A stretch of 64,000 nucleotides of DNA from Phaeosaccion multiseriatum (taxonomy: Eukaryota > Protista > Ochrophyta, other classes). Below the pieces are notes generated by a model. That model was not told the DNA's origin. It searched no databases and worked only from the letters and a program-made list of their open reading frames with translations. A program made the position numbers and the translations under genes. Where the stretch lies: the NCBI GenBank assembly GCA_965112735.1, contig OZ218955.1, forward strand, positions 2,666,001-2,730,000, written 5' to 3'. Shown piece after piece: positions 1 through 61,100 of this stretch (the stretch's first letter is position 1; every line of letters starts with the position of its first letter).

Positions 1-328
1 AAGTCAGCGTGCTTCCTTCCACCTTGCAGAGAGACTGCTCAACCCCGTATCGAGCAGGCTCGTCGAGAACGTGAGACACTCTCATTTGCATGCGCTTTGC
101 CAAGACAACGAGGTGCTGTACAATCCCCTGTTCTTTATCCACCACATCTCGCCCCCCGCCCAGCACGCTCAAGCCAACAGCAATGGGCGTCTTTTCGCTC
201 GGGGCAAGCTTCAATCAACTGCCGTGCATGCAACCAACTCCTGATGCTGCACTGCACTGCACTGCACTGCACTGCACTGCACCACATCGCTGGCCCCCTC
301 AGCAAAGCCGGCACCCCCCTCCCCCTCC

Positions 329-452
329 AAGGGCCAAGCAGGCCTCACAACTCTGACTCTGCTTGCTCTGAGGGCCAAGCAGGCCTCACAACTCTGACTC
401 TGCTTGCTCTGAGGGCCAAGCAGGCCTCACAACTCTGACTCTGCTTGCTCTG
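329..452. repeat. 41-bp tandem repeat, about 3 copies
   Basis: agggccaagcaggcctcacaactctgactctgcttgctctg is repeated head-to-tail with no spacers, downstream of the transporter stop. Confidence 0.9.
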
Positions 453-596
453 CTTCTTCTTCCCTTGGGGGGGGGGCACGCCACCGAGGCGAGGCGCATA
501 GCCATCAGTCTATCAGTCTATCAGTCTGTCAGTCTGTCAGCCCGCTCGTCAGTCCAAGGAAGGGCGTCAATCACCAGTCAGTCCGTCAGCCGCCCG

Positions 597-3500
597 TCAG
601 CCCACTGGGTTCGAGGACCCCCTTCCCCACTGCTGGACGCTGACCCCTGAGGAGGCCAGCATGGCGAAGATGCCCGCTGCCATGAGCCCGACATCGAGGG
701 CGTAGCGCCATTTGCCAAGCCGCTTCACGCCGAACAGCTGTACACACACATGGAGATGGAGAGAGGGAGGGAGAGGAGAAGACAAGAGAGAGGGAGAGAG
801 AGGGTAGAGAGGGGGGAGAGAGGTGGATACATATGAATGAGCACACGTCCCCCTCAAGGTAGTTCCTCCTGCGAGCAGGCAGCCCCTTCCCCTATGAAGA
901 GCATGACCTGATGGCCCACTCGCCCTCTCTCTTCCATCCCCACCCACCACCATCGACTGCCATCCCTCCACCACCCCCTTGACCCCTTTGTCTCGTCTTT
1001 CGCCTTTGACCAACCTGCAGATGGAAGGCGACAGGGAAGACGAGTGCGAGAGGCACCGCACACAACCCGCACACGAGCCCCACAAACGCGTCAAAGGATT
1101 GGCGAGCAAACACCGCCACAAGGGCCGACAGACCCACCATTACAGTGCGCAGGGCTGGGAGGAAGGGGGGGGAGGCAGGGAGGGATGGGAGGGAGGGAGG
1201 GACGGGAGGGAGGGAGGGACGGGAGGGAGGGAGGGACGGGAGGGAGGGAGCGAGGGGTCAGTGGTGGTGGTGGCCGTGTGTGTGCGTGTGTGTGTTATGT
1301 GTGTTTCGATGCCCCTCCTCACCGTTCTTCCCCCACTTGCGGCGCACACTGGGCAGCTTGCCGTGCTCCCTCCAAATGAGCCTCTCCAGCACCTTTGTAG
1401 GTGTGGCAGAGGACGAGGGAGGGGGAGGGGGGAGGAGGAGAGAGGAGAGAGGAGGGCGGACAGAGGAACGGAGCGGAGACACACCACAGCGGCTCAGGCC
1501 AGGCCATACGTCAGGTTATGCATTAGGACAGGAGAAGGGCCAGGAGAAGACATGAGGGCCGCATGAGGGAACATGCACACACGCGCACGCACGCACCCAC
1601 GCACGCACGCACCCACGCGAGAGAGACTGAAGATAGAGGGAGGGAGGGAGGCGAATCCTGACCTTGACGGCAGGGAAGAGCTGCAGGGGGAAGGTGAGGA
1701 TGACGGCTACGCAGTACGCAAGCTTGGCCACGTTGCCGAGAGCGTTCCCGGGGGGGATCTCCATGGTCACAAACTCGGCTGTCTGGGGATGGGATGGGGG
1801 GGGGGGGGGGATGGCAGTGGATGGATGGGGAGGGGACGGCAATGGATGGGGAGGGGAGGGGTAAGAGGAAGAGGATGCAAAGAAGAGAAGAAGGGCACAA
1901 CGCATGGGGGTTTGTCCATGTGCATTCATTCAGCCCATCCACTGCCATCCTCGCTCCGGGAGTGGGAAGGAAGGAAGGAAGGAAGGAAGGAAGGAAAAAA
2001 GCAAACAAAATAAAGGGGCAGTGGGGAGGCCGTCACCGCAAGTCGGGGCAAGAACAGCAGCCAGTAAGGTGCCAGTTTCAATTTCGATGCAGTTGATTGC
2101 GCCCATTCACTGCCATCCCCCCGCTGACCTTGGCCCCATAGGCGAGGTACCCCGCAGCACCGAATCCCCCATAGAAAAGCGTGATGCAGAACATCATTCC
2201 GCACACGAGGCGGGGGAAGGACGAGCGCCGGGAGGGATGCATCGAGTCCTGGATGGGGATCACCTAAGGATGCATGGCAGTGGATGGCAGTGGATGACGA
2301 AGGGGAGATGACAGTGGATGGCAGAGTATGGCAGTGGATGGCTCGTTCGCTCGCTCACTCACTCACCACAACCACTCTCTGTCTTGACACCCACCCACCC
2401 ACCCACCCACTGTCCTGACACCCACCCACCCACCCACTGTCCTGACACCCACGCATCCACCCACTCACCAGCCCCACGGCCTCGAAGCAGGCCACCACAG
2501 AGCCCATGAAGATGAAGCACTTGTCAGGATTGATGAGCTGCACAGCGTAGTGCGACACCCCAGCCGCGTCCTCCTCCCTCGCCACCCCGTCTTGGGAGAG
2601 CTTCAGCGCCACAAAGTACTGTGGAGGGAGGAAGGGAGGGAGAGAGGGAGGGGAGGGGAGGGGAGGGAGAGAGGGGGGGAGGAGAGGGATGTCAGTCCTA
2701 TGCCTTGTTCGTGTTCTCTTTCCCTCACTTGACTTACGCACCAACCAAGCCCCCCTTCTTTCCCCTCCCCCTGACTTTCTGCCCCCGACTGAAGTCTTTC
2801 TTTCCTTGACTTACTGTTTCCTTGACTTACTCAACGTACAAAGCACTCGTGTCCTGTCCTTTCCTTTTCCAGTGTCTGACTTACTGACTTACTGACTCAC
2901 TGACTTACTGTCTCCCCCTTACCATGAGGATGACGAGGCCCACAAGCATGCACACGTTCGCCAAGAACATGCCCAGGCCCAGGTACTTGACACGACGCAC
3001 CCACGCCAGCGGTACGTAGGCCATGAGCTGCCATCCGATGAAGGCGTTGGGCGAGGTCCAGCGGGGGTGCATGGCGGCCCCTGAGCTCAAGTGTCGCACT
3101 GTGCGAGACACGTTGCCGCTCACAAAGATAAAGTACGTGATGCAGTAACCTACCTGGGTGCGTGTGTGTGAGTGTGAGTGAGTGTGTGGGTGTGTGCGTG
3201 TTCGTGCAGAAGTATGTGTGAGAGAAGTGTATGTGTGTGTGTGTGTGCGCGCCTATCCCTCCCTCCCGTCTTGTCCTCCCCCCCCCCCCTCACAACACTC
3301 ACCTGACTGAGCAGCAGCGACACATCCACGACCATCCTCCCCCAAGGCCCCGCAGCGGCATCACCGATATCCCCGAATGACGTCACCACCTGCCCTCCCC
3401 CCCGGGGTGTTCCCCCACCCCGGGAATTGCCCCCACCTGGCTTGCCCCTGACCTCCCCCCTTACGAGAGCACTCTTGCACTTGAGCAGGAGTATCATGTT

Positions 3501-12949: not shown

Positions 12950-14722
12950 ATGGCACCGGAAATGGCGGCCATCAACGAGAGGGAAGAGGCTAACCTCCTG
13001 GGCCCGCGAAAGGACGAGCAGAGGATGCGCGACGCCCGCGCAGCGTCACTCAAGCTCAAACGAGCGGTGGTGTTCGTGCTGATCTTCTTTGTGGTGGAGT
13101 GCGTGGGTGAGTGAGAGGGAGGGAGTGAGGGGTAAGGGAGGGTGGGAGAGAATCTTTAAGGGAGGGAGGGAGTGAGTGAGGGCGAGGGGCTTGGTGGTTG
13201 AGTGAATGAGGGAGTAAAAGTGAACGGGGTGAGTGGTATGTGAAGGAGTGAAAGAGAGAGGGAGTAAGTCTTACGAATCTCTCTACTGCTCTGTGTGGCA
13301 GGGATCGTCTTTTTGACTCTCTGCTTGATCCTTCCCCCTCCCCGCTGCAGGAAGAAGCGCCGCCTGTCCCCTGTTGCACCCCCCCCCCCCCCCCACCCAC
13401 CCTGCCCAACATTGACACTGATTGCACCCCTCAGTACTCTCCCCTCCACCCTCACCCCCGCCCCTTCCACCTCATTGCACCACTCAACACACCCACGCAC
13501 CCACACAGGCGGCATTTGGTCTGGCAGTCTTGCCATCCTCACCGACGCGGCGCACCTTCTCACCGATGTCTCGGGCTTCATCTTAGCCATCCTGGCGAGT
13601 GAGATTGCCATTGCGCCTTCGTCGGACCGTTTCACCTTTGGGTTCGCTCGGGCAGAGGTGCTCTCAGCCTTCGCCTCCACCTCCTTCATCCTCGTACTGT
13701 CTGCCTTCCTTATTTATTCTGCGGTAGGCCGAATCATCGCGTACGCCAGGGGTGGAGGGGAGGAGATTGACGGCAGGATGATGACCATTATTGCCTTCAT
13801 GGGCCTGCTTGTCAACTTGGCTCTCATCCTCATCCTGGGCCACGGGGACGGCGACCACGGGGGGGCCGGGGGCGGGCACAGCCACGGACACAGTCACGGC
13901 CACTGGGGGGGGGGGGAGGGTCATGGCCAGGCGGGGCACGGGGTTACTGAAAGGCATAGCAACCCGCGAGTAGTAGAGAGGAAGCAGGTGGGGCTAGCAG
14001 TTGGTGGTACAGTAGGCGGGGGGGGGCTCGGGGAGAGGACGCCATTAGTAGGCGGTGGGCAGTCTACAGCAGCAGCAGCAGCAGTAGCAGGAGGAGGAGG
14101 AGGAGGAGGAGGAGGAGTTGGTGACATCGCAGCAGCAGGGAACGGGGACACCTACAATGCCATTATTAGCGCGGCCGAGGAGGGCGGCGGGGGGCACGCT
14201 CACACAGAGCACGGGGAAGAGGACGCGCACGCACACACGCACGACCACGGCCACGACCACGGCCATGGCACAGGCACAGCTTCATTCTTAGGCTCAAGGT
14301 CAGAGGAAAGGACAGAGTCAGGGTCAGGGTCAGGGTCAGGGTCAGGGTCGGAGTCAGGGTCAGGGGCGGTGGAACATGGACATGCTTCGGCGCGCAACAT
14401 CAACGTGGAGGCCGCGGCTCTGCACGCCGTGACGGACATGTTGCAGTCTCTCGGGGTGCTCATCGCTGGCGTGCTCATTTGGTACAAGCCGGAGTGGAAG
14501 ATGGCGGATCCGGTGGTCACCATTTTGTTTGCGCTGTTTGTGTGCTATAGCACCAGGACGATTTTGGATGAGGCCTTGCACATGTTGCTGCAGGGGGCGC
14601 CCAAGGTGGGTGCGGTGTTTACGTCAATGGGTGGGTGGTGAATAAGTCAGTGGTTGGGGTGTGAGAAGAGGCGAGGCAGGTAGTCAGAGAGATGGACGGA
14701 CAGACGGACAGACGGACAGATC

Positions 14723-22600: not shown

Positions 22601-24364
22601 TCTTGATGATGCTCTTACAGCATGTATGCTCTGACGTATGTGCATGTTACGTATGTATGACGTATGCTTCTCATCTATGTGCTTGTTGCATCAGGACGGG
22701 CTACCCTTGGATTGACGCAGCCATGACTCAGCTCAGGCAGGAGGGATGGATGCACCACCTCGCCAGGCACAGCGTGGCCTGCTTCCTCACAAGGGGGGAC
22801 CTCTGGATCAGCTGGGAGAAGGGCGCACAGCACTTCGAGGTGTGTGTGTGTGTGTGTGTGTGTGCATCAATTGGGAGGAGGAGAAGAGGGATGGCAGTGG
22901 ATGGAGGAGAAGAGGGATGGTAGTGGATGGAGGAGAAGAGGGATGGCAGTGGATGGAGAAGAAGAGGGATGGCAGTGCATGGAGGAGAAGAGGGATGGCA
23001 GTGGATGGAGGAGAAGAGGGATGGCAGAGGGTTTCGGCGGATAAAATGAGGAGCATGGCAGCGGAGTAAGGAGAAGGAAGCGGGGGCCTCGTATGTCGAT
23101 ACGTGCCGCATGTGTCCGTCTCTGTCTCTGTCTGTGTCTGTGTCTGTGTCTGGCGAGAATTGCCCCCTCCCCTCCCCTCCCCATCCCTCCGTTCACTCAT
23201 ATGTTGGCGCCGCCCCGCTGCCTCCCCCCCCCCCCCACCCTCCTTCTCCTCCTCCTTCAGCGCTACCTGCTGGACGGAGACTGGGTGCTGAACTCCGCCA
23301 ACTGGATGTGGCTGTCAGCCTCAGCCTTCTTCCATAAGGTGGGCCCCTTGCTCTCTCTCACACTCTCACCCCCTCACTCCCACCCTCTCCCCCCTCACCC
23401 ACCCACCCACCCACCTACCCACCTACCCGCCTACCCATCGACCCACCCATCCACCCACCCACCCACGTGCGTGTGCATGATGCACGAGTGTGCCTGACTC
23501 TCTCTCTTCTCTCTCTCTGGCCCAATCCGCCCCTCTCCCCTTCTGATCACACAGTACTGGCATGTGTACTCACCCCTGACGTTTGGCAAGAAGTACGACA
23601 AGAGCGGTGCCTACATCCGGCGCTACCTCCCCGCCCTCAAGAACATGCCCGACAAGTACATTTACGAGCCGTGGAAGGCCCCCGAGGGCGTGCAGAAGAA
23701 GGTGAGGGTAGGGGGAGGGAGGGGAGGAGGGAGAGAGGAGGGAAGGGTGGGAGGGAGACTTAGGCAGAGGGAAGGGGGAGGGGTGGAGGGAAGGAGGAAG
23801 GGAGCGAGCGAGGTTGATCGTTCGTGTTTAGGGAGAGTGACTCTCTCGTGGACGGCAAGCGGTCTGGTCGCCCTGCTCGCAGCTTTGTCTCTGTCGGTCT
23901 CTCCCTCTCCCTCTCCGTCTCCCTCTCCCTCTTCCTCTCCCTCTTCCTCTCCCTCTTCCTCTCACTCTCCCTTTCCCTCTCACTCTCCCTCTCACTCTCC
24001 GTCTCCCTCTCCCTGTCCCTCTCCTTTCCTCCCTCTCCCTGTCCCTCTCCCTCTCCCTCTCTCCCTTCTCTCTATACACCCATCCTTTGTAATCAAACAA
24101 GTCCCCCCCCCCCCCCGCCCCGTGCCCTTCCTCCCCCCTCCCCCCCCCCAGGCGGGCTGCATCATCGGCCGGGACTACCCTCACCCCATTGTGGATCACA
24201 GCGAGGCCTCCAAGGACAATCAGGCCCACTTCAAGAGCCTAAACCAAACGGGGGAGGGGGGGGGGGAGAAGCCATCCAATGCGACCAGTGGGAAGAGAAG
24301 CAGCAGCAGCGGTGGCAGTAGCAGCAGCAACAGGGGGGGCGCTAAGCGAAGCAAAGAAGCGTAA
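19668..24364 (+). CDS. Cryptochrome/photolyase family protein, (6-4) photolyase/animal-like CRY (CPF1-type), multi-exon
   Basis: [130 protein letters not shown]. Confidence 0.95.
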
Positions 24365-53949: not shown

Positions 53950-55841
53950 ATGAAGCTCACCAGTAGCACCACCACCCTGGTGGTCACCATGGCCGTGGCT
54001 GCTCTGGCCCCCAGCAGCGCCACCGGTGTCTTTGAGTGCTGTTCCGAGAGGTACAATGGCGACACGCCCATGTCGTGCTTCGTCGACCCTACTTGCAGCA
54101 TGGGTGGGGGACAGTTCGGTGGGCTCGGGTGCATGGCGGCGGGCGTGAAGGACTGCCGCTTTTGCGAGGTGCGATATAGCTATATTGGTTGAGGTTTTGC
54201 GCGCGGATACCATCCATGCGAAAATTTGGTGTATGTGTGGTATCTAGGATGGGATGGGATGGGATAATCGCCTCGATGGCGCGTCTCCCTCTGTATCCTT
54301 CCTCCCTCTCTCTCTCCTCCCTTCTGCCCTCCCCCCCCCGAAGCGCGGCGCCTCGCACTCATCTCTTCCCTCTCTTTCTTGTCTCAACAGTTCGGCGAGT
54401 TTGTAAATATTGCGTGCCCCAGCACTGGATCCGCACCTACCCCTACGCCTGTGGCCCCGGACACAACCCCCGTACCCGCCGCCACGGAGGCTCCCACGCC
54501 GGCGCCCACCATGGCACCAGTTGACCCCACACCTGCGCCCGTCGCTCCTGTGACGACTGCGCCCGTGGCTCCTGTGACGACTGCGCCCGTGGCCCCCGTC
54601 ACGACTGCGCCCGTCGCCCCCGTCACGACTGCGCCCGTGGCCCCCGTCACGACTGCGCCCGTGGCCCCCGTCACGACTGCGCCTGTGGTGCCGGATACCA
54701 CTGACCCTATCTTCGAGTGCTGTGACAGGGGCTACAACGGCGATCAGCCCATGCAATGCTTCATCGATCCTACTTGCAGCAACACCACTCCCCCTCCTTA
54801 CGGGGGACTCGGATGCAACGCTCAGGGAGTCAGGGACTGCCGCTTCTGCGAGGTACGCAACAGCTCTTAAATTGGTTTCGGGAAGCAAGCCTTTCTTCCT
54901 GCTCACGCTTCCCTTCTTTCTGTCCCTCATTTGTCACATCCCTTTTGCGTCACCAGTTCGGACTCTTCAAGGACATTCCCTGCCCGGGCGCTCCCTCTCC
55001 CACCCCCGTCCCTGTGGCTCCTGTCACGACTGCGCCCGTGGCCCCCGTCACGACTGCGCCTGTGGTGCCGGATACCACTGACCCTATCTTCGAGTGCTGT
55101 GACCGGGGCTACAACGGCGACCAGCCCATGCAATGCTTCATCGATCCTACTTGCAGCAACACCACTCCCCCTCCTTACGGGGGACTCGGATGCAACGCTC
55201 AGGGAGTCACGGACTGCCGCTTCTGCGAGGTACGCAACAGCTCTTAAATTGGTTTCGGGAAGCAAGCCTTCCGACATGCGTCACACACACAATGGTGACA
55301 GTGCCCTCTGACGCTTCGTCTCTCTTTTGCCTTCCCTTCGTCTCTTCTTTTCCCTCCCCTGTCTCTCGTCTGCCGGCCACACGCGCTCTTGCATCACCAG
55401 TTCGGAATCTTCAAGGACATTCCCTGCCCGGGCGCTCCCTCTCCCACCCCCGTCCCCGTGGCTCCCGTGACCCCCGTCCCTGTGGCGCCGGTGACCCCGC
55501 CCCCAGTGGCGCCCGACTCCCCCTCGTTCGAGTGCTGCGATGAGGCATACCTGGTGAGTTGGGCGAAGGGTGGTGGCTGGTGGCTGGAGAGTGCCTCTTT
55601 TGCTGCTGCTGCTGCTGCTACTACCTCTGCTACTCTCACTGCCACATACTACCCCTGTTGCTAACGCTTCACCGTCCCTTGTGTATCCCCCACCCACCAG
55701 GCCGACGGAACCGCCAAGCAGTGCTTTGTGGACCCTTCATGCGCCCGAGGCGGCCTGGGCTGCAACGCCGGCGGAGTCCAAAATTGCCGCCTCTGTGAGC
55801 ACAAGCAATACTCCGAGGTTGTGTGCGGCGGGGGTTATTAA
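53950..55841 (+). CDS. Secreted protein with four 8-Cys domains (CC..CFxDPTC..GGLGC..CRFC..C) separated by Pro/Thr-rich (APVTT)n linkers
   Basis: Signal peptide MKLTSS..VAALAPSSATG; phase-0 intron after CRFCE in each of the first three domains; stop TAA at 55839-55841. Confidence 0.85.
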
Positions 55842-57135
55842 GTAAGCATTAGATATGGCTTACATACATGCCTTCGGTTAGGAACCCTTGTCGCTTCCCT
55901 CTTTGCCCACAAGTAGAGTGAATCAAATAGAGAGCGAGAGCGACAAATTTTGTTGTGCGATGTGTGGCGGACTTTCCTGTTGAAAATCCTTTTGTTCTGG
56001 TGTTTGTTATGTGTGATGACGTGCGCGGACTTTGACTGTTGAAGATCCCTTCTGTTCTATATGTACCTAAAAAAGAAACTCTTGTGCATAGGGGGGCGTT
56101 CATTTGATGAGGCGGGGGGCGGGGGCATTTTCAAGACTCCACAGGCCTTGCTGCCTGCCTCCTGTGTGAGGGGCGGTGCGGCAGCAGGCGTCCGAGTTAA
56201 ACTAATTAATGAAGTTACATACACCTTGTGTGTGTGTTGTTCAATGGCGAGTCAGCTCCATTCCGTCAGTTTTTGGCGAGAGCCATCTGTTTTAGGTAGG
56301 GCTGCCTCCAAGCATAGCATCCCAAATGTCCTCTGTTGAAAAAGGGATGTAAGATCTTATATTATAAAATAATTATTAGTAGAAACATAGAAGAAGAAAG
56401 GAGGAAACTCATCGCTCCTCTTCTTTCTGTGAGACATTGCCCTCTGTGAGCCAGTGCCCCACAAGTGCCCCACTGCCATGGCGCCTACAATTGGTCGGCC
56501 TCCCCAGCAGCGGGCAGCGCTCCGAGGGTGCTGTGCTGCCTCACGTACTTGTCCGTCTCTCGAGGCAGGGGACATGCCATAGCACTGGCACTGTCCATAG
56601 CACTGGCACTGGTGCTGAGGGAGTCCCACATAAGCCGTCGCCCTGCGCGTGTCTGCGCATTCTCGAGTGAAGCGGTGGACCCTCTGCGGTGGAAGGATGG
56701 AGAGGGCGGGCCACGCACAGAGAGAAGACAGGGGGTGGGTAGGGGGGGGGGGGGGGGCAGCAACGGTTTAAGACGACGAAAAGGGGCAGGGGTGTGCGGC
56801 TAAGGCAAAGTCAAGTACGTAGGAGAGGGAGAGGAGAGAAGGGGAGAAGAGAGAGGAGAGGAGAGGAGGGGAAAGAGAAGAGAGGAAAGGAGGGGAAAGA
56901 GGAGAGAGGAGAGGGGAGGAGAGGAGGGGAAAGAGAAGAGAGGAGAGGCAAGGAGAGGAAAGGCCGGTGCTCGCTTGTCGCCCCTCGCAACGAACGAGCA
57001 CGAGTCAGGTACCCACTAGAATGCTGCCGCTGCCGCTACGCTCACGCCCGTCCGTCCTTTCGAAGCGACCCAAGTCAAAACAACAGAAACCCCTTCGTCA
57101 AGCCTTCCTCCCCCCTCCCCCCTCTCTCCGCACAC

Positions 57136-57663
57136 TTACACGCCTTCTCCTCCCACTAGGACGTGCGTGACAAAGGCTTGGCTGGGCCGCACTCCGTGTG
57201 TGCGCACGTAGTGTGCAAGGCCCTCCGGCCACACAAAGACACCGTCCGTCTGCGAGCAGCACCCCAGCTCCCTCGCCTCCGCGCCGCACTGGCCAAAGCG
57301 GCAGAAGGAATAGCCCAACTCCACCGACTCCACCAAACCCCAGCGGATATGCCGCAGCACGCGCCGCCCCTCCTCCCCTCGGGCCCACTCCCAATCCACA
57401 CAAGCCGTGGGGTGAGGGAGTCGCCCGTCTTCTTGTGAAGCAGGAGGAGGAGCAGGTCGACCTCCGTCCGTCCCCGAGCCTTCCCTCCCTTGCTCTGCTC
57501 CGCTGGCGCCCGCCTTCTTGTCTCCGATGTCGTGGTCCTTCTCCTTGCGCCAGAACCCGACTTCTATGAGAGGCCTGCGTGCTCCTGTTGCTGCCTGCGC
57601 AGCACTTGCTGATGCTGAAGTTTTCGCTGCTGGCACTTCCTCCCCGGCCTCCTCGATCGCCAT
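57136..57663 (-). CDS. Intronless 175-aa conserved hypothetical protein (LPHP..VD.EW / GYSFCRF..CG / TDGxFVWPEGLAHYV..H.VRP family)
   Basis: Single ORF with a non-repetitive globular C-terminal half; I recall this motif pattern from bacterial and giant-virus hypothetical proteins but could not verify it here. Confidence 0.75.
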   Translation of the reverse strand: MAIEEAGEEVPAAKTSASASAAQAATGARRPLIEVGFWRKEKDHDIGDKKAGASGAEQGREGSGTDGGRPAPPPASQEDGRLPHPTACVDWEWARGEEGRRVLRHIRWGLVESVELGYSFCRFGQCGAEARELGCCSQTDGVFVWPEGLAHYVRTHGVRPSQAFVTHVLVGGEGV

Positions 57664-57708
57664 ACGAGCTACTGATCAGCTCGACTCAAAGACCAATTAG
57701 AAGAAAAC

Positions 57709-57960
57709 TCAGAGGCCGATCCTGTCTTGCTGCTCCGCCTTCCGAACTTTCCTGGCCTTCGCCCGCGCCGCTTCGGTCAAGGCCTCTTCTTCGCCTTCGC
57801 CTTCTTCGCCCGAGGCACCACCCTGCAGCTGCAGGCGCTGCTTCGCTTGCTGCCGCAGCTGCTCTTTCTTTTTGAGGAGCGCCGCGTCCTTGACGAATCG
57901 CTCGTACTCCTCCACGTCCTCCGGCTTGAGCTCAATGCGGGTAGGGGCCTTGCGCAACAT
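57709..57960 (-). CDS. CDC26: Anaphase-promoting complex subunit CDC26 (APC12), 83 aa, intronless
   Basis: N-terminus MLRKAPTRIELKPEDVEEYE matches the CDC26 signature [20 protein letters not shown]; followed by a charged helical tail. Confidence 0.88.
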   Translation of the reverse strand: MLRKAPTRIELKPEDVEEYERFVKDAALLKKKEQLRQQAKQRLQLQGGASGEEGEGEEEALTEAARAKARKVRKAEQQDRIGL

Positions 57961-58186
57961 AATATCAACTTCGATGGGGATGGCGCCCTCTCCCTCTCCC
58001 TTCTTCTCCTTTCCTCTTTCCCTCTCTCCCTTTGCGCGGTGCAAGCTCAGACCGACAAACGGAAACTCGCACTTCCCGCCGTCGGACTTTCCGTTGTTGG
58101 CCTTATCGGTGGATGGATTCATAGACGCATCGGAAGCAGCAATAGAAAAAACAGAAGAGGCTGGGGCAAGTGATCGCTGCTGAGAC

Positions 58187-61100
58187 ATGAGCGACGCTCG
58201 GCAGCAGCACCTGGGCAACAGAAGAAAGAAGAGGCTCGCCCTAACGGGTGGTGGGAATCGAAGGGGCCTGGAGGAAAGTCTGCTTCCTTCGCCCTCGGGA
58301 GGAGGGTCTACCGCAACAGGGTCCAACAGGAGAAGCTTGCCACGGCGGTGCGGCAGTGTGCTCTTCAAGATCCTCGCTATCGTAGGCCTCATTGCAGTTC
58401 TTCGGGCTGTGGGTGAGACTCCTCCCAATGGTGAAGAAGGGAGAGCAGAGGGAGCTTCTTCAGCACCAGGGAGCGCCGCAGCTGTTGATGAAGGGCTCGT
58501 GGCTGGATTTTATGGTGTGAGTCAGAGACGCAGACGAGAGGGTTGCTTATTACAGGCGCCAGGGGGGCTTTGCTGAGGCTGAAGCAGCGGGAAAACTCTC
58601 TTCCTGACGAGCGAGATGCTCCCCACACCACGAGTGCAAGCCCCCCCCTCCCACCCTGCTACGCCATCCCTTCCTCTCCACACCGCCTTGCTCACTGTCA
58701 CCTTGCCTCTTTGCCTTCTTGCCTCTCCGTCCCCGTCCAAAGGCCATAGAGGGTGCAGGGCGCTTCCTCTCCGAGCTTGGCGGCCGCGGGCGGGAAAAGG
58801 CAGCCGCGGCAGCAGCGGCAGCAGCAGCAGGTGGCCCCGCACCTGCTGCGCGAGCGTCCACTTCTTCAAGCCGCGCAAAGCGCACAGGGAATTTAAGAGG
58901 CGCCATGGATAGAGACTCTTCCCCATTACCACCACCACAACCACCACCACAACCACCACCACAACCAGAGCAGACTGCGACAAGCACGATCGCCGCTCAG
59001 GCACCCACTCAGGCACCCAATCTGCTCATCGGCATGGCACAGGGGCTCACAGCTGATGAGCTGACAGTCTTCGCCGCCTCCTTTCGAGAGCGTGAGTACA
59101 GAGGAGTAGGCAGAGAAGTAGAGCGGCGCATCGGCCATTGCACGAGTGCTGAAATGGCACCGCCCTCCCTCTCTCCTCCTTTGCCCTCCTCCCCACGAGA
59201 CTCTGCGGACTCATCAACTCACGCACTCACTCACGCACTCACTCACGCACTCACTCACTCATTCACTCACTCACTCACTCACTTACTCACTCACTCACTC
59301 ACTCACTCACTCACTCACTCACTCACTCACTTACTCACTCACTCACTCACTCACTCACTCACTCACTCACTCACTCACTCACTCACTCACTCACTCACTC
59401 ACTCACTCACTCACTCACTCACTCACTCACTCACTCACTCACTCACTCACTTACTCACTCGCTCTTAGTGACCCACGTACAGTCACACACTCACCCACTA
59501 ACTCACTAGCTCACTCGCTCCTCCTCCTCCTCCTCCTCCTCCTCCTCCTCCTCCTCCTCCTCCTCCTCCTCCTCCTCCTCCTCCTCCTCCTCCTCCTCCT
59601 CCTCCTCCTCCTCCTCCTCCTCCTCCTCCTCCTCCTCCTCCTCCTCCTCCTCCTCCTCCTCCTCCTCCTCCTCCTCCTCCTCCTCCTCCTCCTCCTCCTC
59701 CTCCTCCTCCTCCTCCTCCTCCTCCTCCTCCTCCTCCTCCTCCTCCTCCTCCTCCTCCTCCTCCTCCTCCTCCTCCTCCTCCTCCTCCTCCTCCTCCTCC
59801 TCCTCCTCCTCCTCCTCCTCCTCCTCCTCCTCCTCCTCCTCCTCCTGCTCCTGCTCCTCCTCCTCCTCCTCCTCCTCTTCCAACCCCCCCTCCTCCTCCT
59901 CCTCCTCCTCCTCCTCCTCCTCCTCCTCCTCCTCCTCCTCCTCATCCTCCTTTTCCATGCAGACTCCCCCCTGAGTGAGTCCGACATAGTCCTCTTCCTG
60001 GACCACCCCATCTCCCCTCCGCACCAGGCCATTGTGTCGCGCTTTGGCGTCACGGCCCTCTCCATTGATCTTGCTGACTTAGAGCCGGCCTTCCTTAGGA
60101 GGTATAGCCCCGCCAGCACTCGTTGGGTCCTCATCCATCGCTTCCTTGAGCAGAGGGGCTCTCGCTACAGCAAGGTGAGGCGACGGATGGCAATGGATGG
60201 GGCAGGGGTGGTGGTGGAGAGGCGGGGGGGTGAGGGACAGGGGGAGAGGGGGGGATGAGGAGGGGGGCGCGCGCGCACGCACGTACACACGCACGCGGCA
60301 CGCACACAAACAAACAAACACACACACACACACACACACATACATACATACACACACACGTACATACACACACACACACATACACACACACATACACACA
60401 CATATACACCCACATACACACATACCTGGGTGAGGACGTAAGGTGCGAAGCATTGCTTCAGCTTACGTACCTACCTGCCTATATGCCTGCCCAATTCATA
60501 AACCTGCTCCTCTGCTACCCATAATACACGTGCCTGCCCATACACCTGCCTGCCCATACACCTTAGGTGCTGACTGTGGAGGTGCGCCACACGTACTTCC
60601 AGGCGGATCCCTTCGCCACCGTGGACCTTCTGCATCCCTCAGTGCACGCCTTCCTACACACAGGCACCATAGGTAGGGCTATGGCAGTGGATGGATGGCA
60701 GGGGATGGATGGCAGTGAACGGATGGCAGTGAACGGATGGCAGTGGATGGATGGCAGTGGATGGATGGCAGTGAACGGATGGCAGTGGATGGATGGCAGG
60801 GGATGGATGGAGGGCGATTGGCACTGGAGGGTGCCCCCCTCGAGGTCGATGGTGACGTGTTTGAGAGCGAAGGATCGAACACACACACACATGCAAACGC
60901 TCACACTCACTCACGTCCTTCCTCCCCTCCCTCCCTCCCCCCCATAGGCAAGAGTGCCGCAGCATCTGACTGGGTGGGGGATTGCTTCGGATCTGAGGTG
61001 CTCGCTTCGGTGTCCTCCAAGACGCTGAGCAGCCCTTCTGTGGTGATGGGCACTTCCCGCCTTATGGGGGGGTACGTTAGTGCCATGGCCGCCTTCCTAC

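Follow-up and report, generated by a model that had tools for sequence, protein, structure and literature searches.

Nuclear bicistronic mRNAs have long been regarded as rarities, and the CDC26-TTM3 transcript is the best-studied plant case. It is known from green algae as well as land plants (Lorenzo-Orts et al. 2019, according to PMC11291117), and the same account, citing Lorenzo-Orts et al. 2019, has the Arabidopsis transcript reported as a candidate target of nonsense-mediated decay. Green algae also have bicistronic loci whose second open reading frame (ORF) is translated by leaky scanning (Gallaher et al. 2021, PMC7896298; PMC11291117), and these are marked by a depletion of ATGs upstream of the second ORF and even by overlapping stop and start codons (PMC11291117). 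Here we describe a locus of the ochrophyte alga Phaeosaccion multiseriatum in which CDC26 is probably the 5′ cistron of such a unit, followed by a different partner gene that we call ORF2. The locus lies within a stretch of 64,000 nt (assembly GCA_965112735.1, contig OZ218955.1, positions 2,666,001 to 2,730,000), which we refer to as the window and number from its first letter.

The locus resembles the plant CDC26-TTM3 pair in several respects. CDC26 is a short 5′ ORF (83 aa here, 65 aa in Arabidopsis), a larger and unrelated ORF comes next on the same strand in an arrangement conserved over a wide clade, and an exon junction falls within the downstream ORF, beyond the stop of CDC26. In contrast to the plant pair, the alga is a stramenopile, ORF2 encodes a DUF7919-like protein rather than the triphosphate tunnel metalloenzyme TTM3 (CYTH), and the single mRNA and its dual translation are predicted here from DNA. 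Because the partner is not TTM3, we do not count the locus as a member of the CDC26-TTM3 system; we see in it a probable CDC26 bicistron of a stramenopile, with another partner. Like the green-algal leaky-scanning loci, it combines a short first ORF with a short or overlapping inter-ORF region (45 nt here, and a TAATG overlap in the related transcriptome contig L012 described below), few or no ATGs before the start of the second ORF, and a spacer that has no conserved structure. Unlike them, it belongs to another lineage, and a single locus was examined here. In the literature that we searched, CDC26 bicistrons are reported from plants and green algae only, and no nuclear bicistron is reported from brown algae.

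The first cistron, on the minus strand (Table 1), has a product reading MLRKAPTRIELKPEDVEEYE...QQDRIGL. It matches the Pfam model for CDC26 as a subunit of APC/C, the anaphase-promoting complex or cyclosome (PF10471), with 44.4 bits and an E value of 3.2e-11, passing the cut-off of 24.5 bits. In APC/C structures such as 3hym and 4ui9, CDC26 docks into APC6/CDC16 through an N-terminal segment that begins at Met1. The corresponding window peptide, MLRKAPTRIEL, also starts at Met1 and pairs one to one with residues 1-11 of human CDC26 in PDB entries 5khu, 4ui9 and 3hym. At the other end of the protein, the C-terminal RIGL motif is kept in all six of the lineages compared. Judged by this homology, the ORF encodes a real CDC26, and incorporation of its product into the APC/C is predicted from family membership. 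The reading frame remains open upstream as far as 58428, with in-frame ATGs in that extension; we take 57960 as the start because the conserved N-terminus of the family begins exactly at the Met of MLRK. Relative to this start, the closest upstream ATGs are at -162, -170 and -228, and the CDC26 ORF itself contains no internal ATG in any frame.

The original prediction took both ORFs to be intronless, with ORF2 ending after 175 aa. For ORF2 this proved wrong. Its apparent TAA stop (57138-57136) is part of a GTAAGT splice donor (57139-57134), and the matching acceptor AG, at 56685-56684, follows a pyrimidine tract. Splicing of 57140 to 56683 is in frame, with GT+A making a Val codon, and gives a product of 240 aa. 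Beyond the junction this product reads GSTASLENAQTRAGRRLMWD...PLPRETDKYVRQHSTLGALPAAGEADQL, with its stop at 56487-56485; written with the junction valine, exon 2 encodes (V)GSTASLENAQTRAGRRLMWD...PLPRETDKYVRQHSTLGAL...DQL followed by the stop. Exon 2 matches, in the right order, a C-terminal part that is uninterrupted in the brown-algal homologues (E 4e-4, in a single comparison). Furthermore, the spliced product aligns with many homologues straight across the junction, up to residue 228-240, and for each of seven independent homologues tblastn returns a second match, collinear and in the same place and frame, within 56721-56488. Because the apparent stop sits in a splice donor and exon 2 encodes a motif that the homologues carry unbroken, we conclude that ORF2 is not intronless.

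Other elements of that prediction fared better. The CDC26 stop at 57709 and the ORF2 ATG at 57663 are correctly placed, on the same strand and exactly 45 nt apart, and this ATG is the next one on the minus strand. The TAA said to rule out read-through is real (57699-57697), and it is one of three stops in the frame that the two ORFs share, the others being the TGA of CDC26 itself (57711-57709) and a second TGA at 57678-57676; together these speak against read-through. A scan of the 45-nt spacer found neither an ATG nor an AATAAA. The claim that so small a gap leaves little room for a 3′ untranslated region plus a promoter also stands, at 45 nt and with no poly(A) signal. Since 45 nt are too few for a poly(A) site together with a promoter and a leader, one transcription unit is the most economical reading. 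A small hairpin had also been described directly before the ORF2 ATG. It is present and forms part of the minimum-energy fold, but the stability of the region is at chance level (z = +0.73, with 154 of 200 shuffles folding equally well), and its sequence is absent from the brown-algal spacers with which we compared it. For both reasons we reject the hairpin as a functional element and give it no weight.

Table 1. Features of the CDC26-ORF2 locus in the window, and layout of the two ORFs in contig L012 (numbered within that contig)
Feature	Coordinates	Strand	Remarks
Probable 5′ leader of the unit	57961..58121	-	161 nt 5′ of the CDC26 ATG; ATG-free; putative leader
CDC26 ORF	57709..57960	-	83 aa + TGA; ATG 57960, TGA 57711-57709
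Inter-ORF spacer	57664..57708	-	45 nt; in frame with both ORFs
Small hairpin CGAGCTG-ATCAG-TAGCTCG	57665..57683	-	7-bp stem with one G-U pair; 5-nt loop; in the minimum-energy fold
ORF2 exon 1	57140..57663	-	codons 1-174 and two bases of codon 175; DUF7919-like domain
ORF2 intron	56684..57139	-	456 nt; GTAAGT...pyrimidine tract...CAG; carries a CT-rich microsatellite
ORF2 exon 2, including stop	56485..56683	-	encodes a homologue of the C-terminal motif found in eukaryotic members of the family
L012 leader			66 nt
L012 CDC26	67..243		58 codons; Pfam 41.4 bits
L012 partner	243..821

The pairing of CDC26 with this partner extends beyond Phaeosaccion. We found brown-algal homologues by a word-based protein search with ORF2 and then read the surrounding DNA. 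In each of four brown-algal lineages, the ORF immediately upstream of the ORF2 homologue, and on its strand, is CDC26. These lineages are Ascophyllum nodosum, for which both contigs (L001 and L003) come from a single assembly, and those of L005, L006 and L007. Synteny in related algae, which had been proposed as a check, agrees with the order seen in the window. The brown-algal CDC26 ORFs (MLRRKPTR[IV]ELTTDDV...) were confirmed by Pfam, and the gaps that separate them from their partners measure 198-336 nt.

Two brown-algal gene sets in EukProt, those of Nemacystus decipiens (P0005) and Cladosiphon okamuranus (P0162), hold gene models in which CDC26 and the partner are fused. The two joins differ and are not homologous, and in both models CDC26 has lost its conserved RIGL end. 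Probably they arose when a bicistronic locus was annotated and a gene caller bridged two ORFs that the evidence presented to it as one unit.

The pairing is seen most directly outside the brown algae, where the two ORFs occur together in L012, a 902-nt contig of an AT-rich protist (Table 1), whose partner protein is listed by the transcriptome-only collection MMETSP as 'Transcript_34034 ... type:complete'. Here the stop and start codons overlap by 1 nt, as TAATG. On this comparative evidence, from brown-algal loci, fused models and L012, the core idea of a stramenopile bicistron led by CDC26, with a partner other than TTM3, is upheld. A metagenome scan with an ORF2 profile returned 80 loci, none with CDC26 nearby; judging from contig names and short matches, these loci are apparently mostly prokaryotic or viral, and they are useful as a negative control only.

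A ribosome that reaches ORF2 by scanning must meet no other AUG beforehand. We therefore counted the internal ATGs between the two start codons and obtained P values from dinucleotide shuffles. This zone is free of ATGs in Ascophyllum (L001; 557 nt, P = 0.0007) and in L006 (426 nt, P = 0.04), and it contains a single ATG in L005 (481 nt, P = 0.09), in L007 (511 nt, P = 0.13) and in L012 (176 nt, P = 0.30). In L005 and L007, that sole ATG lies within 24 nt of the ORF2 start. Summed over the four brown-algal spacers, there are 2 ATGs in 1024 nt, compared with about 12 predicted from the density in the flanks (about 1.2 per 100 nt). Because these spacers cannot be aligned between genera, the avoidance of ATGs appears to have been maintained rather than inherited as sequence. 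In L012, the only extra ATG before the partner opens a 37-codon out-of-frame ORF (positions 122-235 of the contig), which ends 8 nt before the partner start.

We consider it likely that CDC26 and its DUF7919-like partner share one bicistronic mRNA in this alga. Under this reading, RNA polymerase II would transcribe the minus strand as one unit with two cistrons: the 83-codon CDC26 near the 5′ end and, 45 nt on, the two-exon ORF for a DUF7919-like protein of 240 aa. Scanning ribosomes would initiate at the CDC26 AUG, and some would either bypass it (leaky scanning) or resume scanning after termination (reinitiation), and then start at the ORF2 AUG, the next on the RNA. The arrangement would be old in ochrophyte algae, with retention in brown algae and at least one further protist, and would run parallel to the CDC26-TTM3 bicistron of plants and green algae with a different partner. 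The DNA of the window and its comparison with related loci are our grounds for inferring a single mRNA, translation of each ORF and a mode of initiation. On both sides, the pair is flanked by gene-like ORFs on the opposite (+) strand, none of which Pfam names.

A number of observations weigh against a bicistronic mRNA, and some of them come from the window's own ATG content and start codons. The zone between its two start codons (297 nt) has no ATG, which is not significant (P = 0.18), and exon 1 of ORF2 is equally ATG-free. Shuffling of synonymous codons in the CDC26 coding part likewise gives zero internal ATGs, and we dropped this part as an argument for leaky scanning. Since exon 1 is ATG-free too and the coding part is uninformative, the signal of ATG avoidance rests on the brown-algal spacers and not on the window. 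The CDC26 AUG, in the context gatattAUGu, has A at -3 and U at +4 and is not obviously weak; the ORF2 AUG, in gctcguAUGg, has C at -3 and G at +4.

The remaining observations on this side concern expression and distribution, and several of them would suit two separate, overlapping monocistronic genes. In that case, the start site of ORF2 would lie within or just upstream of the CDC26 ORF, the CDC26 mRNA would end within ORF2 or its intron, and the adjacency would reflect a shared promoter region or synteny. The public runs found to cover the stretch number four, come from one sample and behave as genomic DNA, with even depth over 55600-59100 and contig breaks only at repeats. Brown-algal spacers of 200-330 nt could house a core promoter, but their avoidance of ATGs is unexpected of a plain intergenic promoter, and the 45-nt gap of the window and the 1-nt overlap of L012 leave no room for separate ends. 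L012 is a transcriptome contig, and assembly can merge overlapping transcripts of neighbouring genes; it nevertheless runs continuously across both ORFs, which are also joined in the gene models of two brown-algal genomes. Many homologues of ORF2 stand alone, so the gene can be expressed by itself: no CDC26 was found around the homologue in Aphanomyces stellatus (L009) or in L008 (165 nt of upstream DNA only), L010 and L011, and L093, which carries one of the nearest relatives of the window protein, has none nearby. Finally, the groups in which the genes are linked (the window, the brown algae and L012) do not form one clade in the ORF2 tree. The deep nodes of this tree are weak, so it cannot separate one ancient linkage followed by losses from repeated linkage. 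On balance, we regard separate genes as an unlikely explanation.

We regard it as very improbable that the CDC26-like ORF is a regulatory upstream ORF, encoding a conserved peptide that throttles ORF2 while the working CDC26 is encoded elsewhere. Its position and size would suit such a role, but the peptide retains the full CDC26 signature from Met1 (MLR[RK]xPTRIEL), the stretch by which CDC26 docks into APC6, and it keeps its C-terminal RIGL in every one of the six lineages. The equivalent plant ORF makes functional CDC26, according to the account in PMC11291117, which cites Lorenzo-Orts et al. 2019. A CDC26-partner fusion protein, made by splicing or by stop-codon read-through and suggested by the two fused EukProt models and the shared frame of the window ORFs, is scarcely credible and is rejected for the window, where three in-frame stops intervene and we could read no plausible intron in the 45-nt gap; the fused models, with their non-homologous joins and lost RIGL end, look like a gene caller's bridge, and the ORFs are in different frames in L001, L005 and L007.

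If CDC26 and ORF2 do share a single mRNA, we lean towards leaky scanning over reinitiation as the route to the second start codon, because the upstream regions are poor in ATGs and the brown-algal gaps exceed the 100 bp beyond which substantial reinitiation has been argued to be unlikely (PMC11291117). Doubts of other authors about reinitiation after a large first ORF are also reported there. Reinitiation stays in play, given that the CDC26 AUG has A at -3 and that stop and start overlap as TAATG in L012. The exon junction of ORF2 lies 569 nt past the CDC26 stop, so an mRNA whose ORF2 goes untranslated would be a candidate target of nonsense-mediated decay. This candidacy, which would echo the report from Arabidopsis, is speculation.

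We turn to the partner protein. Against Pfam, ORF2 gives a weak match to DUF7919 (PF25535; 24 bits, under the 27-bit cut-off) and to no other family. All 10 proteins of our alignment A1 match the DUF7919 model, in the C-terminal half of the domain, with E values of 0.1 or better (best 2e-06), and a profile built from the eukaryotic ORF2-type proteins retrieves 2610 relatives. By these matches, we assign the ORF2 product to DUF7919, an uncharacterised family whose members come from phages, giant viruses, bacteria and protists. With its relatives of DUF7919 type, the partner is not TTM3, in agreement with the original prediction. The family is widespread, with members in brown algae (Ectocarpus CBN76468.1 among them), many oomycetes and other protists. 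The ORF2 protein is linked to the APC/C by position only, which may tie it to APC/C expression.

Members of the family have in common the core motif C-x3/4-C ... TDG-x2-VWPEG-x2-HY-x3-H, whose columns are invariant or near-invariant in alignments A1, A2 and A3. The conserved residues of the window protein are C121, C126, WPEG (145-148), H151 and H156, and the Cys/His set among them (C121, C126, H151 and H156) is a putative zinc site. Compared with DUF7919 (PF25535), the core motif and the fold of a homologue, P0044, are common, the window score falls below the cut-off, and eukaryotic members carry an additional motif at the C-terminus, L-W-D ... P-x-P-x-G-T ... Y-L-R ... S-T-L. Many homologues from brown algae, oomycetes and L012 end in a CaaX-like C-x-x-x (CVLL, CIAS, CTAS, CALS or CVIS; P0004, P0013, P0028, P0160, P0165, P0167, P0176 and others), which suggests prenylation and membrane attachment of those proteins. 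The window product ends in ...GEADQL and has no CaaX, and we found no further CaaX-bearing exon within about 1.2 kb downstream of exon 2.

The structure of the window protein was modelled poorly (pLDDT, the predicted local distance difference test score, of 60, with a shallow alignment). The close homologue P0044, modelled from an alignment of 135 sequences, reached a pLDDT of 94 and a predicted template-modelling (TM) score of 0.88. Its model has no neighbour among solved structures, either by Foldseek against the PDB or in an exhaustive VIA-align scan (best Z 2.0), and a profile search of PDB sequences with the partner family came back empty. It does superpose on a DUF7919-labelled cluster of the ESM Atlas (TM 0.58/0.64) and on unlabelled clusters with scores of up to 0.80 by target. 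Proteins neighbouring it in structure come from jumbo phages, giant viruses and Actinomycetota and are uncharacterised, and one neighbouring cluster consists of large proteins that also bear a TNT toxin domain. Searches of PHROGs and NCBIfam for a function of the partner gave no match, and a literature search for DUF7919 found no paper on the family. A close member of prokaryote type, P0009 (L004:4001-4417), sits in a dense, same-strand, phage-like contig together with genes for an HNH endonuclease, a Macro domain and an SNF2 helicase.

Several other features of the window were recorded. On the plus strand, 54379-55247 holds two near-identical repeats rich in Pro, Thr, Ala and Val, each followed by a cysteine-rich module (CCDRGYNGDQPMQCFIDPTCSNTTPPPYGGLGCNAQGV-R/T-DCRFCEVRNSS) and neither with a Pfam match; this is probably a tandemly duplicated exon or gene that faces the 3′ end of ORF2. 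Upstream of CDC26, within or beside plus-strand ORFs at 59146-60258, lie long in-frame microsatellites, with (THSL)n followed by a very long run of triplets coding for Leu, Glu and Arg. The plus-strand neighbour there contains conserved-looking pieces and has no Pfam match. Further away, 23498-24361 (+) encodes the FAD-binding domain of a photolyase or cryptochrome (PF03441), and 13268-14638 (+) encodes a cation-efflux (CDF) transporter, apparently in a single exon, whose top matches are from Tribonema minus, Pylaiella, Ectocarpus and Laminaria, followed by oomycetes. These matches place the alga among the ochrophytes, close to yellow-green and brown algae.

For gene annotation, these results call for a correction, as several gene sets of brown algae either overlook CDC26 or have it fused in error. 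The inter-ORF element is compact and natural, and it may be of use for expressing two genes in stramenopile algae. The association with CDC26 also provides a first biological handle on the DUF7919 family. If the bicistronic reading is correct, the design would recur for CDC26 in a distant lineage and would offer a natural second system in which to ask why. We suggest, tentatively and with some doubt, that CDC26 became a 5′ cistron on two or more occasions: its partner was TTM3 in the plant lineage, and in ochrophyte stramenopiles it was a DUF7919-like protein. The latter, which is probably zinc-binding, appears to be prenylated in many species and has a predicted fold absent from solved structures, might then be tied to cell-cycle control. 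The suggestion would also point to a general rule, by which this tiny subunit of the APC/C is best expressed when it rides with a larger 'carrier' ORF that, by being translated, protects the mRNA from decay.

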